Assembly: GCA_026936335.1 (NCBI GenBank)
Contig: JAPMXV010000027.1
Location: forward strand, 1-64,000
Direction: 5' to 3'
Source of the DNA: Mantamonas sphyraenae STR306
Taxonomy: Eukaryota > Protista > CRuMs
DNA: 64,000 nt
Positions 55 to 9,241 of this stretch are shown here, piece by piece. A model generated the notes under the pieces. It ran no database searches. It was not told where the DNA came from and saw only the letters and a list, made by a program, of their open reading frames with translations. A program made the position numbers and the translations under genes. Position 1 is the first letter of the stretch. Each line of letters starts with the position of its first letter.

Positions 55-327
55 ATTATATTATGTGGATTAGCATTGTTGTGATGGTTCCGGTCTATGT
101 CAAATGAGTTGTGCTTGTGTCTGCTGGCGGGGTGGCTGAGTTGGGTGATGACATGGGGCAGTGGGCATTGGATGGGAGTGGAAATGTTGCTGGTGAGTGG
201 CCATCGTCCTGCAACGCCGCGCAGTCAGTAATTTCCTCCCGCCTTCAACCAAAATATCACCAACACCCACAACTTCCTCCACTAGTCCAACACAATCCAC
301 ATACACTCCACTACCACCGCCACCAAT

Positions 328-3300
328 ATGGACAACGACTACTCAAACACTCCGAAGCAACAACACACACCCAACACCTACCCAGCGTGCGTTCTGCCTT
401 GTACTCCGTTTTCTGACTGCCCGCTTCTTCCGCTTCCTTGCCTCCTCCATGCCTCCGTCGCTTCCCTGCACTTTTCCCCTGCATCTCCACTTCCACATCA
501 CCACCGCTGCTGTCTTCTCTGCCCTTCTCCGATCCCGTCTCCCCTGTCACTGCCCTCCCCGTTGCCAGTTTCCGCGTCTGCCAATCTCCTCCGTTTTCCC
601 TCCCTGCTCGTTCCGGCCTCCCTTCACACCGCTTCTGCCCTGACGGCGTCCATTCCGCCTTCCGCTCACCGGTTCCACACCGCCCTGCCACTACCCGTCT
701 ACCACACAGCTACGGGTACATGGTCGCTCCCATGGCTGCCCAGCCGTTTTCGAACATGCTGCCCGTCTCTGGCGTACAAAACACGTATCCCCAACCACCC
801 GTCATCTGGGTCCCTGTCAACACTCATCCCCAGCAGCACCACGCATATGCTCATCGGGGCCACCCATACTACGCCTACCCTCCTCCGCCGCCTCCTCAGC
901 CGCGACAAACCGCCCAGATGCACTTCGCTCGGCCTCCGTTGCACCGTCCGCCTGCTCAACCCACCACAAACCACAACCGCGTCCCCAAACGCGTCAGCCC
1001 TGCCTTTGTCGGCATCACACGCACCACATCCACCACCACATCGTCGTCCCCCACCCACCAGGCCACACGGCAGACTGGAGACAGCGACGACGACGACGCA
1101 GACCAGGACACGCACACACATGACACCGGCGACGTGGAGGACCTGATGTTTCTCAACTTTGGCCACCGAGAACCACGGTCAATCACCAGCAACTCTGAGT
1201 GGATGACCAGCTCGTGGATGGAGGCGTACGAAGAAGAAGGCGTGGCAAACGACGCAACCCAGCAGCACGTGGACGACGTGTTGGAAACACAGGGTACCTT
1301 CAGCTTTGCAGACACTGATGATTTCATGGATGAGGAGTACATGCCGCAAGAAGACGACGACGATGACACAGACGATATGAAGCAGGAGGACACGGACGAA
1401 TGGCAGCCGAGACACACAAGTCGAGGTCATAGACGAGGCAGAGACCACAACAGCCGTCGTACTGGTCCACAACGATGAAAGGCAGCGGACAGCGCAGGCT
1501 CAGGGTCACGGCTGGCAGTGGCACGGAGACAGGAACATCGAGCACACGGGCAATGAGGGCCAGGAACGGAGACACCGGCGCAAAGAAGGTGTCAGGGGCG
1601 GAGAAGTCGAACAAGTTGCCAGATGATGTCGTGCGCAAAGGATGGTCGATGAACTGGCGCAGTGAAGAGCGCAGCCACAGCAACAACAAGGAGCACACGG
1701 CACTGCTGATACACATGTACACTCTGGCCAACGAGCAACCCATCGACAACATCCTCGACCTCATGACCCTGCAGGCGCGTGTCGTGGTCTGCCATGGCAC
1801 CCTGACCACGCTGGTCCGACAGATCCTGCTCGCTCTGGGCAACATTCCCCTTTCCCAGGGCGACATGGCCTTCTGCCTCACCCTTCTCGGCCGTGACATG
1901 GATCATCAGGCGTGCAGCCTTGCTGTCAACAACGCTGGTCTGGCCATGGGTGTGACAAAGGCTGGGTTGAAGGTGTGCTGGCTGGAGGAGCCACACGACC
2001 ACGGCGACCCCAACTACGCCCTCCTCCATCTGCTCATGACAGAGATGGACACTCTTGGCGACAGGCCCCATCCCACCACCTGGAAGGAGCACGAGCAGAC
2101 CCAGCTGTGGCTGCAGAAAGCACGACGCCCTGCTGACAACAACAGCGACCCACACTGGACACAATGCGACTACGACCGCCACCTCACCACCACCAAGGTG
2201 GACAAGTGGCATCCAGAGTCTGCGCGCAGTGGCTGGAGCAGGGGAACTCCCAGTGACGAGCGTGGCAGCTGCACTGCGCGGGAGTTCCAGACGCTGCTGG
2301 CACACATGAAGGCACGCGCAGCCAAGCACCCTCGCCATGAGCAGGCACACGAGCTCCAGGCACTGCGTGAGCTGATCAACAACGGCAGCCTGATGTCCCT
2401 GCTGCGACACATCATCCTGGCGCTGGGCAACGTTGGCGTGCCGCCTGTCGACCTGGCCTTCTTTGCCCGCCTCCTCAGACCGCACCTCACCTACAAGCAT
2501 GTGCAAGGCGCCATCACCAAAACCCTCACGCGTGGCGTCACCACCCTCTCCCTCAAGATCGCCTGGCTCGACAACCCCCAACCCAGCGACGCCACACTGC
2601 ACACCCTCCTGCACACCCTCATCGACCGCATCACACCTCACATCACCACCCGCCCCACCACCGTCGACGCCGTGAATGGCCTCGACATCCCCGAGCTTGT
2701 CCTACCCGAGACCACAGAGGAGGAGAAGATGGTCGTGGAGGATGGACTGCCAGATGGCGTTGTGCGCAGTGGCTGGACTCACTGGCGCAAGAGCGAGCGC
2801 AGCCGCAGCAACAAGAAGGAGCACACCGCTCTGCTGAACCACATGCACACCCTGGCCAACGAGCATCCCATCGACGACATCCCAGATCTCATGACCCTGC
2901 AGGCGCGTGTTATGGTCTGCCATGGCACCCTGACCACGCTTGTCCGACAGATTCAGCTCGCTCTGGGCAACATTCCCCTCTCCCAGGGCGACATGGCCCT
3001 CTGCCTCACCCTTCTCGGCCATGACATGGATCAACACCCGTGCGGACTCGCCATCCACGACGCTGGTTTGGCCATGGGTGTGACAAAGGCTGGGTTGAAG
3101 GTGTGCTGGCTGGAGGAGCCACACGACCACGGCGACCCCAACTACGCCCTCCTCCACCTGTTCATGACAGAGATGGACACCCTTGGCAACAGGCCCCATC
3201 CCACCACCTGGAAGGAGCACAAGCAGACCCAGCTGTGGCTGCAGAAAGCACGACGCCCTGCTGACAACGACAGCGACCCACACTGGACACAATGCGACTA

Positions 3301-3889
3301 CGACAACCACCTCACCACCAACAAGGTGGATAAGTGGCATCCTATGTCTGTGCGCACTGGCTGGTGCACGACCGCAGACGAGCGTGGCAGCTGCACGGCG
3401 CGGGAGTTCCAGACGCTGCTGGCACACATGAAGGCACGCGCAGCCAAGCACCCTCGCCATCAGCACGCACACGAGAATCAGGCACTGCGTGAGCTGATCA
3501 ACAACGGCAGCCTGATGTCCCTGCTGCGACACATCATCCTTGCGCTGGGCAACGTTGGCGTGCCGCCTGTCGACATGGCCTTCTTTGTCCGCCTCCTCAG
3601 GCCACGTCTCACCTACCAACTAGTTACCAGTGCCATCAGCAACACCCTCACCCGCGGCGTCACCTCCGTCTCCCTCAAGATCGCCTGGCTCGACAAGCCC
3701 AAACCCAGCGACTTCACACTGCACACCCTCCTCCACACCCTCATCGACCGCATCACACCCCACATCACCACCCGACCCACCACAGTCGCACTCGTCAACG
3801 CCTACCCCATCCCCTCCTTCACCCTGCCCAAGCGCAAAGACCCTTCCTCCTCGTCGTCCTCCTCCTCCAAACGCCAACGCCTCGAATGA
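328..3889 (+). CDS. Uncharacterised modular repeat protein, copy 1: Pro/His/Tyr-rich and acidic N-terminus, four putative winged-helix-like modules (A-B-A-B), C-terminal NLS-like PKRK...KRQRLE; 1-bp frameshift near 1472
   Basis: Exon 1 328-386 (MDNDYSNTPKQQHTPNTYPA). A GT..AG intron at 387-709 splices in frame into ORF 438..1478. ORF 1475..3889 follows after a 1-base deficit relative to copy 2 (CCACAACGATGAAA vs CCACAAAAGATGAAA). Confidence 0.75.
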
Positions 3890-4197
3890 ACCACCCTTTC
3901 ATTCTCACACCCTCCTCACTCATTCCCCTCCCCATCCACTCCACCACCCTCTCCATCACCTCATCCGGGAGTGTCACCCACCCTTCCCACCCTCTCTCCT
4001 CCACATACGCCTCCATCCCCCCACACCCAAACATCGCCTCCCCCTCTTCCCCATTCATCACCAACCCCGTCTCTTTAGCCTCGTCCCCCTGTGCACCCCA
4101 CCCATCCCCCTTCAACCAAAACATCACCAACACCCACAACACCCTCCACCAGTCCAACACAATCCACATACACTCCAGCACCACCACCACCGCCACG

Positions 4198-7100
4198 ATG
4201 GACGAAGACTACTCAAGCACTCCGAAGCAACAGCACACACCCAACACCTACCCAGCGTGCGTTCTGCCTTCCACTCCGTTTTCTGACCGCCCGGCTTCTC
4301 CCGCTTCCACGCCTCCTCCATGCCTCTGTCGCTTCCCTCCACTCCTCCCCTGCTTCTGCACTTCCCCATCACCACCGCCGCTGCCTTCTCCGCTCTTCTC
4401 CGATCCCGTCTCCCCTGTCGCTGCCCTCCCCGTTGCCAGTTTCCCGGTCTGCCAATCTCCTCCGTTTTCCCTCTCTGCTCGTTCCAGCCTCCCTCCACCC
4501 CTGCTTCTGCCCTGACGGCGTTCATTCCGCCTTCCGCTCACCGTTCCTACTTCACCTTTCCCCTCCGCGTCTCCCCCACAGCTACGCGTACATGGTCCCT
4601 CCCATGGCTGCCCAGCCGTTTCCGAACATGCTGCCCGCCTCTGGCGTACAAAACCCGTACCAGCATCCACAACCACCCATCATCTTGGTCCCTGTCAACA
4701 CCCATCCCCAGCAGTACCACGCATATGCTCATCAGGGCCACCCATACTACGCCTACCCTCCTCCGCCGCCTCCTCAGCCGCGACAAACCGCCCAGATGCA
4801 CTTCGCTCAGCCTCCGTCGCACCCTCCGCCTGCTCAACCCACCACAAACCACAACCGCGTCCCCAAACGCATCAGCCCTGCCTTTGTCGGCATCACACGG
4901 ACCACATCCACCACCACATCGTCGTCCTCCTCCCACCAGGCCACACGGCAGACTGGAGACAGCGACGACGACGGCGCAGATCATGACACACACACACATG
5001 ACACCGGTGACGTGGAGGACCTGATGTTCCTGGACTTCAGCCATCGTGAACCACGGTCAATCTCCAGCAACTCAGAGTGGAAGACCAGCTCATGGGTGGA
5101 GGCGTACGAAGAAGTCGGCGAGGCAAACGACGCCATCCAGCAGCAAGTGGACGACGAGGTGGGAACTCAGGGCGCACTCAGCTTCGCAGACACTGTTGAT
5201 GCCATGGATGAGGAGTACATGCCACAAGACGACAGCGACGACGACGCAGACGGCATGGAGCAGGAGGACACGGACGAGTGGCAGCCGAGACGCACAAGTA
5301 GAGGCCGCACACGACGACGTAGAGGCCACATCAGCCGTCATACTGGTCCACAAAAGATGAAACCCAGCGGACAGCGCAGGCGCAGGGTCACTACTGGCAG
5401 TGGCACAGAGACAGGAACATCGAGCACACGGGCAAGGAGGGCCAAGAACGGAGACAACGGCGCACGGAAGAAATCAAGCGAAGACAAAACGAACAAGTTG
5501 CCAGATGGAGTTGTGCGCAAAGGGTGGACAGCGAGACACAGCGACGAGCGCATGCACAGTAACAAGAAGGAGCACACGGCACTGCTGAACCACATGCACA
5601 CTCTGGCCAACGAGCATCGAATTGACAACATCCCCGACCTGGTGACCCTGCAGGCGCGTGTTGTGGTCTGCCATGGCACAACGACCACGCTGGTTCGGCA
5701 GATTCAGCTCGCTGTGGGCAACCTTCCCCTCTCCCAAGGCGACATGGCCATGTGCCTCACCCTTCTCGGCCATGATGTGGATCAACAGGCGTGCAGCAAT
5801 GCCATCAAAGACGCTGGTCTGGTCATGGGTGTGACAAAGGCTGGGTTGAAGGTGTGCTGGCTGGAGGAGCCACACGACCACGGCGACCCCAACTACGCCC
5901 TCCTCCACCTGCTCATGACAGAGATGGACACTCTCGGCAACAGGACCCATCCCACCACCTGGAAGGAGCACAAGCAGACCCAGCTGTGGCTGCAGAAAGC
6001 ACGACGCCCTGCTGACAACGACAGCGACCCACACTGGACACAATGCGACTACGACCACCTCCTCACCACCATCAAGATGTACCAGTGGCATCCTGAGTCT
6101 GTGTGCAGTGGCTGGGCAGCGCACAGTCCCAACGACGAGCGTGGCAGCTGCACGGCGCTGGAGTTCCAGACGCTGCTGGCACACATGAAGGCACATGCAG
6201 CCAAGCACCCTCGCCATCAGCACGCGCACGAGCACCAAGCACTGCGTGAGTTGATCAACAACGGCAGCAAGATATCCCTGCTGCGACACATCATGCTGGC
6301 GCTGGGCAACGTTGGCGTGCCGCCTGTCGAGCTGGCCTTCTTTGTCCGCCTCCTCAGGCCACAACTCACCTACCAACTAGTTGCCAGTACCATATGCAAC
6401 ACCCTCACCCGCGGCGTCACCTCCCTGTCCCTCAAGATCGCCTGGCTCGACAACCCCAAACCCAGCGACGCCACACTGCACACCCTCCTCCACACTCTCA
6501 TCGACCGCATCACACCCCACATCACCACCCGTCCCACCACTCCCGCACTCGTCAACGCCCTGTACATCCCCAAGCTTGTTCTACCCAAACCCACAGAGGA
6601 GGAGATGGTGGCCGTGGAGGATGGACTGCCAGATGGCGTTGTGCGCAGTGGCTGGAAGTCCTGGCGCAAGGGCGAGCGCATGCACAGCAACAAGAAGGAG
6701 CACACCGCTCTGCTGAAGCACATGCACTCCCTGTCCAACGACCATCCCATGGACGACATCCCAGACCTTATGACGCTGCAGGCGCGTGTTGTGGTCTGCC
6801 ATGGCACCCTGTTGACGCTTGTCCGACAGATCCAGCTCGCTCTGGGCAACATTCCCCTCTCCCAAGGCGACATGGCCTTCTGCCTCACTCTTCTCGGCCG
6901 TGATGTGGATCAAATGGCGTGCGTCCTTGCCGTCCAGAACGCTGGTCTGGCCATGGGTGTGACAAAGGCTGGGTTGAAGGTGTGCTGGCTGGAGGAGCCA
7001 CACGACCACGGCGACCCCAACTACGCCCTCCTCCACCTGCTCATGACAGAGATGGACTCACTTGGCGACAGGCCCCATCCCACCACCTGGAAGGAGCACA

Positions 7101-7851
7101 AGCAGACCAAGCTGTGGCTGCAGAAAGCACGACGCCCTGCTGACAACGACAGCGACCCACACTGGACACAATGTGACTACGACCACCACCTCACCCCCAC
7201 CGAGGTGGACAAGTGGCATCCCGAGTCTGTGCGCAGTGGCTGGGCAGCGCAGAGAACAAGCGACGAGCGAGGCAGCTGCACGGCACGGGAGTTCCAGACG
7301 CTGCTGGCACACATGGAGGCACGCGCAGCCAAGCACCCTCGCCATCAGCATGCACGCGAGCACCAGGCACTGCGTGAGCTGATCAACAACGGTAACCTGC
7401 AGTCCCTGCTGCGTCACATCATCCTGGCGCTGGGCAACGTTGGCGTGCCGCCTGTCGACCTGGCCTTCTTTGTCCGCCTCCTCAGGCCACAACTCACCTA
7501 CAAGAAGGTTCAACAGGCCATCAGCCTCAACCTCATCCCGTCGACAACCGCCAACCCAGCGCGTCACCTCACCCTCTCCCTCAAAATCGCCTGGCTCGAC
7601 AACCCCAGAGGAGGAGAAGATGGCCGTGGAGGATGGACCCAGCGACGCCACGAGCCTGCACACACCTCCTGCACACCCTCATCGACCGCATCTCACCCCA
7701 CATCACCACCCGCCCCACCACCCATCGAACGCATCACTCGTCAACGCCTACCCCATCAACCCTCCATCCCCTTACCCTCCCCAAGCGCAAAGACCCTTCC
7801 TCCTCCTCCTCCTCCTCCTCCTCCTCCTCCAAACGCCAACGCCTCGAATGA
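4198..7851 (+). CDS. Uncharacterised modular repeat protein, copy 2 (same architecture); last module garbled at ~7530-7790
   Basis: Exon 1 4198-4256, intron 4257-4581, then a long open frame. It ends in the same KRQRLE* (ORF 7633..7851). The 1716-aa ORF is a read-through caused by indels in the last module. Confidence 0.75.
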
Positions 7852-7960: not shown

Positions 7961-9241
7961 ATGTCCAGCGAAGACCACGACGCCCCAGAAGAGGACGAAG
8001 AGTTGGACAGCCAGGATGAAGACGTGGAGATGGAATCCCTCCTTGGCATCACGGCTTCCAGCGAGCTCCCGCGTGCCCGTCTACCCACTACCTTGTCCTT
8101 GCCGCGCCGACAAGGCAGGCAACAACGTGGGAAAACGAGATTCGCAATCCCATGTGCAGCGTGGCCTCGCTTGCATCAGCTCCTGCTCGCCGTGGCTCTT
8201 CTCTTTTCCACCCTTATCGTTGTGATCGCTTCATCCGCCCCTGTGGCTGTTGTGCGGGAGCAACCCTTACCGCAGCCGACAACAACTCCGCCGCCGCCTT
8301 CCGTCGCGTCCAGCACTCTTCCACCTGTTCCGATGTGCATCTCCCCGTACGGCACCACCGTCCAGTGGGCTCGCTACCAGAATCAAGATGTCACCGATGT
8401 TGTTGTGCACGCCATCGCTCAAGTCGTCGCTGAAGGCAAGACCACGCTTGCGATCGACGGCGACGACTTTGCCACGTTGTTTTCCAAGGTCCACAACGAC
8501 GCCTTCCCTGGCATCCTCTCAATCCAGTACATCACTCCCTCCTGTGATCACTTTGTGCGCACATGGGACTCGGCTGCGACTGTGGAGCTGCCTGTTGGCA
8601 AGCAGGCCCCCTCCTCCTGCGCGTGGTCTCCGTGCGCGCAGCACTGCACGCCCGGAGCGGCACTCAGCGACACAACGCAGTGCGTGACCCGTGGTGTGTA
8701 CGCAAACACGCTGTGGTGGAGGCGTGCAACCTGCAACGGGTGTGTTCTTGGTGGCCGCTGGACCCGTGTCGGTCACCTGACCCTGGGGCCAGGTTCTCCC
8801 CCTCACCCTCTGTATGGAAACGACACTCAGCACATTCTAGACCTTCTCAGTGGCCACGATGCCATCATAACCTCTCCACAAGGCTACACCGATCTGCGCA
8901 GCACCTTGGGCGACTTCTCCCAGCTCCGCCTCACGTGCGGGAGGGTAGGACAGGGCTCAGCGATGGATATCGTCATTCCCAACAAGGCAGATGTCGACTT
9001 TCTACTCCAAGACAGCTCACTCAATGCTGGAAGTCGGTATGGCTTAATTGTTGACGTTCACCAAAATGGACGACAACGCAACATCTATTTCGAACGCAGA
9101 TACGCTCGCTCTGGTATGGTCAACCTTGTTGATACCTACCTCTCACCATACTATTGGAACATCGCGTACGGAACTCCGCAATGCGCGAACATGTACGCAA
9201 ATTCGTACGGCTTGCAGTGGTCTGTGTACATTCGCCGCTGA
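7961..9241 (+). CDS. Type II membrane protein: acidic N-terminus, one TM helix, Pro/Thr stalk, Cys-containing ectodomain (possible lectin-like and fibrinogen-like parts)
   Basis: ATG at 7961 (MSSEDHDAPEE); TM LLLAVALLFSTLIVVIASS; motifs WARYQNQDVTDVV...FPGILSIQY and GGRWTRVG. Confidence 0.7.
   Translation: MSSEDHDAPEEDEELDSQDEDVEMESLLGITASSELPRARLPTTLSLPRRQGRQQRGKTRFAIPCAAWPRLHQLLLAVALLFSTLIVVIASSAPVAVVREQPLPQPTTTPPPPSVASSTLPPVPMCISPYGTTVQWARYQNQDVTDVVVHAIAQVVAEGKTTLAIDGDDFATLFSKVHNDAFPGILSIQYITPSCDHFVRTWDSAATVELPVGKQAPSSCAWSPCAQHCTPGAALSDTTQCVTRGVYANTLWWRRATCNGCVLGGRWTRVGHLTLGPGSPPHPLYGNDTQHILDLLSGHDAIITSPQGYTDLRSTLGDFSQLRLTCGRVGQGSAMDIVIPNKADVDFLLQDSSLNAGSRYGLIVDVHQNGRQRNIYFERRYARSGMVNLVDTYLSPYYWNIAYGTPQCANMYANSYGLQWSVYIRR

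Follow-up and report, generated by a model that had tools for sequence, protein, structure and literature searches.

The DNA analysed here (the window) comprises the 64,000 nucleotides at the left end of contig C27 of Mantamonas sphyraenae STR306, a free-living CRuMs flagellate whose FALCON assembly has TTAGGG telomeres and 9,416 predicted genes (PMC10492846); the assembly totals 25,061,354 bases in 78 contigs. The contig opens with nine telomeric (CCCTAA)n repeats (positions 1-54, no strand assigned), in keeping with the reported TTAGGG ends. These are followed by two head-to-tail units of 3.87 kb, 87% identical to each other, each a gene for a string of four protein modules of two alternating types, A-B-A-B. 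The units belong to a large, genuine gene family that has no detected kin and evolves under diversifying selection, and to judge from sequence the chromosome ends of M. sphyraenae hold roughly 170 genes for such strings of helix-turn-helix (HTH)-like modules.

Both genes lie on the plus strand and comprise a 59-nt exon 1, an intron, a region that is successively Pro/Gln/His/Tyr-rich, acidic-aromatic and Arg-rich, the four modules, and a tail of the form KRK-x(n)-KRQRLE. In gene 1, exon 1 (328-386) and an intron with a GTGCGT donor, a CAG acceptor and ~78% pyrimidine (387-709) precede the N-terminal region (710-1615), which carries a frameshift near 1430-1478. Module alignment then places A1 at 1616-2209, B1 at 2210-2659, A2 at 2747-3337 and B2 at 3338-3781, and the tail with its stop codon occupies 3830-3889. 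Comparison with other copies identified exon 1 of gene 2 at 4198-4256 and its intron at 4257-4581, followed by an intact N-terminal region (4582-5497) and modules A1 (5498-6088), B1 (6089-6538), A2 (6626-7216) and B2 (7217-7782). From ~7530 onward the last of these is garbled, with a linker out of place and a number of indels, leaving the tail and stop (7783-7851) out of frame with the assembled open reading frame (ORF). Given the frameshift in gene 1 and this garbling in gene 2, neither window copy is intact as assembled, reflecting either assembly consensus error or real decay.

The spliced gene model was examined exon by exon in 24 copies, which were the top-scoring loci and hence a favourable sample. 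Exon 1 is 59 nt long in all 24, and intron lengths of 315-330 nt cover all three phases; the spliced frame nevertheless reaches module A in 21 copies, 18 of them intact as far as read. Such variation in intron length with the frame kept provides indirect evidence of splicing and translation. A preliminary description of this DNA had recognised eight modules of two alternating, mutually homologous types, and we find them where it placed them, with A and B cores 29-35% identical. Its module size of 185-200 aa fails for B, which consists of ~150 aa and a 29-aa linker, and the genes start at 328 and 4198, with an intron. The acidic/aromatic N-terminal region, Arg-rich segment and C-terminal tail that it had listed are all present. 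The N-terminal region has no Pfam match; the tail recurs in 30 copies with a spacer of 9-26 aa, and its putative role as a nuclear localisation signal (NLS) follows from its classical bipartite pattern.

A gene family at chromosome ends

In searches of the organism's own genome, more than 60 contigs had family copies lying a few kb or less from their ends, on the plus strand at left ends and on the minus strand at high coordinates, that is, directed away from the telomere. First-look counts, which are not exact copy numbers, came to 161-177 for parts that occur once per unit and to 740 for the individual module. The telomere-adjacent leader (55-327, plus strand) is common to family units and is presumed to hold the promoter and 5' untranslated region; it gave 161 first-look candidates adjoining the ends of many contigs, with matches of 88-92%. 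In some genes (loci L021, L019 and L013) neighbouring modules are identical or the AB pairs number three, which shows recent internal duplication or conversion. Identical modules were also seen on different contigs (L028/L029, on C17 and C71).

The preliminary description recognised no known family, and Pfam, NCBIfam, PHROG and PDB sequence searches likewise returned no accepted match, including none to a curated HTH family. Weak Pfam matches to APOBEC, GemA, Gp84 and DUF6197 were short, with E above 0.005, and were rejected. No relatives were detected in word-index searches with the AB unit, the full-length protein or an A+B profile, in the ESM Atlas by features or by structure, among metagenome and viral contigs queried with the modules and the nuclease domain described below, or among phages by tblastn. 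An exhaustive HMMER search of 1.84 billion representatives yielded a single match (E 7.6e-4), to a TPR protein encoded by a metagenome contig of 4.3 kb; it was rejected as spurious. Since these collections probably lack data from other mantamonads, the searches speak to the lack of detectable kin and not to the true age of the family. Literature searches found no description of this family, and the searched passages of the assembly paper make no mention of subtelomeric genes (PMC10492846).

Variation and selection among the modules

Three patches, V1, V2 and V3, had been proposed as hypervariable from the eight window modules (in gene 1, ~1646-1666, 1805-1807 and 1907-1933 in A1; ~2237-2257, 2390-2395 and 2495-2521 in B1). 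This pattern holds over 63 A and 63 B modules drawn from 30 loci plus the window, with scaffold positions conserved and up to 16 residues per site within the patches. All six hypervariable columns of A outside V1 coincide with hypervariable columns of B (hypergeometric p 1e-7), and with A and B only ~32% identical this coincidence amounts to independent replication. Within helix 3, which contains V3, conserved and variable residues lie on faces 166-177 degrees apart, in line with the proposed buried and exposed faces. Residues in V2 and V3 are mostly Q, K, S, N, H, R, L and D, with hydrophobic residues frequent at A-type V3, and the module cores carry charges of +1.3 (A) and +5.3 (B).

A site-wise analysis of non-synonymous and synonymous change over paralogues, suggested as a check by the preliminary description along with entropy, revealed an excess of non-synonymous change at V sites. 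Under a grid codon model most sites are purifying (overall omega ~0.35), and the non-synonymous rate beta exceeds the synonymous rate alpha with posterior above 0.96 at A98, A102, A106, B63, B64, B101, B102 and B106 (twice the log-likelihood difference, 89 and 137). Recombination inflates tests of this kind, and several two-allele sites also flagged by the model probably result from it. In a tree-free check, V-site heterozygosity reached 0.5-0.7 at codon positions 1-2, whereas 162 four-fold sites average 0.13 and only one of them attains 0.6. Local hypermutation was rejected as an alternative to selection, as third positions are less variable than positions 1-2 at the strongest V sites. Synonymous diversity near V sites in B is somewhat raised (0.21 versus 0.11), as expected from linked balancing selection. 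The patches reassort freely: linkage r2 is at noise level past 30 bp, and distinct V2 plus V3 signatures are found in 55 of 60 and 57 of 61 modules (112 of 121 together). We infer that they are exchanged in short tracts between chromosome ends.

Predicted fold and members fused to a nuclease-like domain

An HTH fold of the modules is moderately supported. The structural model predicts a three-helix right-handed bundle with helix 3 exposed, as in the HTH superfamily, and for B1 of gene 1 the model helices (61-72, 79-89 and 95-107) match winged-helix chains; the fold matches comprise or resemble winged-helix domains of cullins, ScpB, Stn1 and MAGE-type proteins. In the sequence, a Gly stands at the canonical position following helix 3. 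Where the wing of the layout put forward earlier would be expected, residues 108-122 (B) and 108-135 (A) have a predicted local distance difference test score below 50 and no strands, and the model has a short helix. Foldseek comparison of the model, also proposed in the preliminary description, gave nothing significant against PDB and BFVD, and a further PDB route added only Zur.

Upon examining an odd fusion at locus L018, we identified three internal genes in which module arrays are joined to a nuclease-like domain: two convergent genes on the 751-kb contig C29 (plus strand, ~74-86 kb; minus strand, ~94-104 kb) and one on C69 (minus strand, 264-270 kb). They possess 5, 7 and ~8 modules, after which the same frame continues into a domain of 210-220 aa and then a helical one that terminates in KRQR. 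Identity to window B1 ranges from 17 to 64% among the C69 modules, very divergent units being mixed with near-standard ones. In the own-genome search the domain was found only in these three genes, and not in window or telomeric members. Between C69 and C29 it is 44% identical, with synonymous sites saturated and a proportion of non-synonymous differences of 0.40, indicating that it is old and constrained.

The domain had no Pfam or PDB match and lies below detection by Pfam, PHROG and NCBIfam profiles. Its motifs WLVD, FTE, YKxR, EAD, DSD and TDVP are invariant in the three copies and follow the order defined for FEN-like nucleases (PMC5499597), with acidic residues after S1, S2 and S4 and before H4 and H5, an arch Lys and an H2TH Asp in sequence. 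Motif spacings of 64-70, 52-58, 24-26 and 47-48 fall mostly inside the ranges of Pol I, phage and FEN1 references. The pattern, which was chosen after the motifs had been seen, recurred in one (core) and none (full) of 200,000 column shuffles, and is present in 8-9 of 23 reference nucleases. Support from profiles is marginal: alignment by hhalign covers only EAD to DxD, scoring 23 against a shuffle maximum of 22, and 19 against 18.5. Taken together, these features make the domain a likely, still putative, FEN/PIN-like nuclease. It shares the S1 Asp, S2 acidic residue, arch Lys, EAD, DxD and H2TH-position Asp of FEN1, XPG, the Pol I 5'-exonuclease and T5 D15 in order and spacing (PMC5499597), but differs in having Glu at S2 and in its fusion to a variable HTH array.

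Several further features of these loci were observed. The frame of the C29 plus gene starts with ~300 aa of unrelated sequence (L034:769-1700, ~73.8-74.7 kb) in which H-Y-T-A-W...YND recalls the C-terminus of papain-like peptidases; it has no Pfam match. Both C29 genes stay open past KRQR and across the splice-acceptor region, entering a second family unit that has more modules and giving read-through frames of up to 3224 aa, the plus copy being frameshifted near L034:6400. Between them (C29:85800-94700) lie multicopper-oxidase-like and MFS-transporter-like genes, identified by eye, and no telomeric repeats. A separate PIN/5'-exonuclease-like domain at C34:214276, within a 2252-aa frame (PF02739, E 8.6e-7), shows no detectable relationship to that of C29 and C69. 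In the window, an orphan ORF directly inward of the array (7961-9241, plus strand) has an acidic N-terminus, a probable transmembrane segment and no significant Pfam match, and joins the gene 2 frame only via the garbled region. A minus-strand ORF at 21218-24043 matches the BET/ET domain (E 7e-14) and contains two arrays of a 60-bp repeat, and guanine-cytosine skew in the window has strongly negative values across the first 50 kb and becomes positive past ~53 kb.

What the arrays may recognise

We consider it somewhat probable that the family constitutes a Mantamonas-specific nuclear repertoire of sequence-specific DNA-binding proteins, built as four-HTH arrays and shaped by subtelomeric diversification and conflict with foreign or mobile DNA. 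Helix 3 would present base-contacting residues from V3 at i, i+3/4 and i+7/8, further contacts would come from V2, where helix 1 begins, and from the V1 arm, and an array of usually four tandem modules would in this way read one long composite site. Short-tract gene conversion among chromosome ends may shuffle the specificity patches, and selection may maintain a wide range of specificities, as would be seen in an arms race against mobile or viral DNA. At the telomeres, members free of the nuclease might mark or regulate bound DNA via their acidic N-terminus, and nuclease-fused internal members might cut or resect it. The modular regulator with swappable specificity envisaged in the preliminary description is partly supported overall.

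Diversifying selection is compatible with any ligand, and the exposed helix face could instead recognise diverse proteins, whether viral or each other's, as in self/non-self or poison-antidote systems. The cullin, ScpB, Stn1 and MAGE-type fold matches and the hydrophobic A-type V3 would suit such a role; we regard it as unlikely, as the 5'-nuclease-like fusion, the NLS-like tail and the basic core of B favour nucleic acid as the ligand and the variable sites have canonical recognition-helix spacing. If that nucleic acid were RNA, transcripts could be selected for decay or sequestration as by Limkain b1/MARF1, where tandem winged HTH domains of the OST-HTH/LOTUS type and a PIN-fold NYN/LK nuclease share one chain in a known RNA-decay architecture (PMC2848206), and the FEN-like group does include RNases (PMC5499597). 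This appears distinctly unlikely: OST-HTH/LOTUS and NYN profiles gave no match to the array proteins, the Mantamonas nuclease-like domain stands at the C-terminus and bears motifs of FEN type (EAD, arch Lys, H2TH-position Asp), and the N-terminus is acidic and activation-like. The OST-HTH/LOTUS family, moreover, is low-copy and not known as hypervariable or telomeric.

The fixed orientation of units adjoining the telomere, their head-to-tail arrays and the old, divergent nuclease-bearing copy on C69 could also be read as marks of a selfish telomere-associated element, a driver or parasite of telomeres encoding a protein that binds the element's own copies or those of rivals, with nuclease-bearing copies as ancestral or helper forms. 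With a spliceosomal intron, no reverse transcriptase, helicase, transposase, gag or terminal repeats seen in the unit, and internal copies lying beside ordinary genes without telomeric remnants, this is very improbable. Scarcely credible is a five-helix bundle like DUF3349 with variability at relaxed surface positions. The short helix at the wing position and a weak local similarity in B (34 of 94 positions, 17-50; E 0.7-1.1) would fit it, but the 15-bit score is far under the cut-off of 28.3, DUF3349 structures are missing from the top 50 fold matches, and V-site diversity exceeds synonymous levels and so is not mere relaxation.

Read as DNA-binding arrays, the proteins recall several known systems. 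As in KRAB zinc-finger and PRDM9 proteins, which combine C2H2 fingers with KRAB or SET domains, a large lineage-specific family of tandem modules has a constant scaffold, positively selected residues on one helix face, concerted evolution and an N-terminal effector region; the Mantamonas arrays, however, lack C2H2, KRAB and SET domains, consist of 150-200-aa HTH-like units in AB pairs, lie at nearly every telomere and in some cases carry a nuclease-like domain. TAL effectors (TALEs) bear swappable specificity residues in near-identical repeats, an NLS and an acidic region, and TALENs join an engineered array to a nuclease. The parallels in swappable residues, NLS-like tail, acidic region and putative nuclease are accompanied by an unrelated fold and repeat length, four to eight modules, intron-bearing eukaryotic genes and an unproven code. 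Repeat units of C2H2, TALE or PPR size (28, 34 or 35 aa) are absent from the 150-200-aa modules, which have no Pfam match; the family would resemble zinc-finger and TALE arrays in its working and be a member of neither. Subtelomeric variable families such as Candida TLO, yeast Y', Plasmodium var and trypanosome RHS share its chromosome-end position and its probable diversification by ectopic recombination; the Mantamonas proteins are not surface antigens, helicases or Mediator subunits, and no homology was found.

Together, these sequences suggest a natural system, not described before, in which proteins that bind or cut DNA can be re-targeted. A stronger version, in which re-programmable HTH-array DNA readers are made combinatorially at telomeres, TALEN-like FEN/PIN members included, with module-to-base rules readable from V1-V3, we advance only tentatively. 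Modular scaffolds of swappable specificity are few: zinc fingers and TALEs for DNA, PPR and PUF proteins for RNA. If DNA binding is borne out, the family would add an independent HTH-based reading array. Its hundreds of variants within a single genome, together with the naturally occurring fusions to a putative nuclease, would form a library from which a recognition code could be worked out, and possibly a new targeting scaffold. A lineage near the root of Amorphea would then spend ~2% of its genes on a telomere-driven diversification system, and the recognition of foreign DNA by a unicellular eukaryote would become directly testable.
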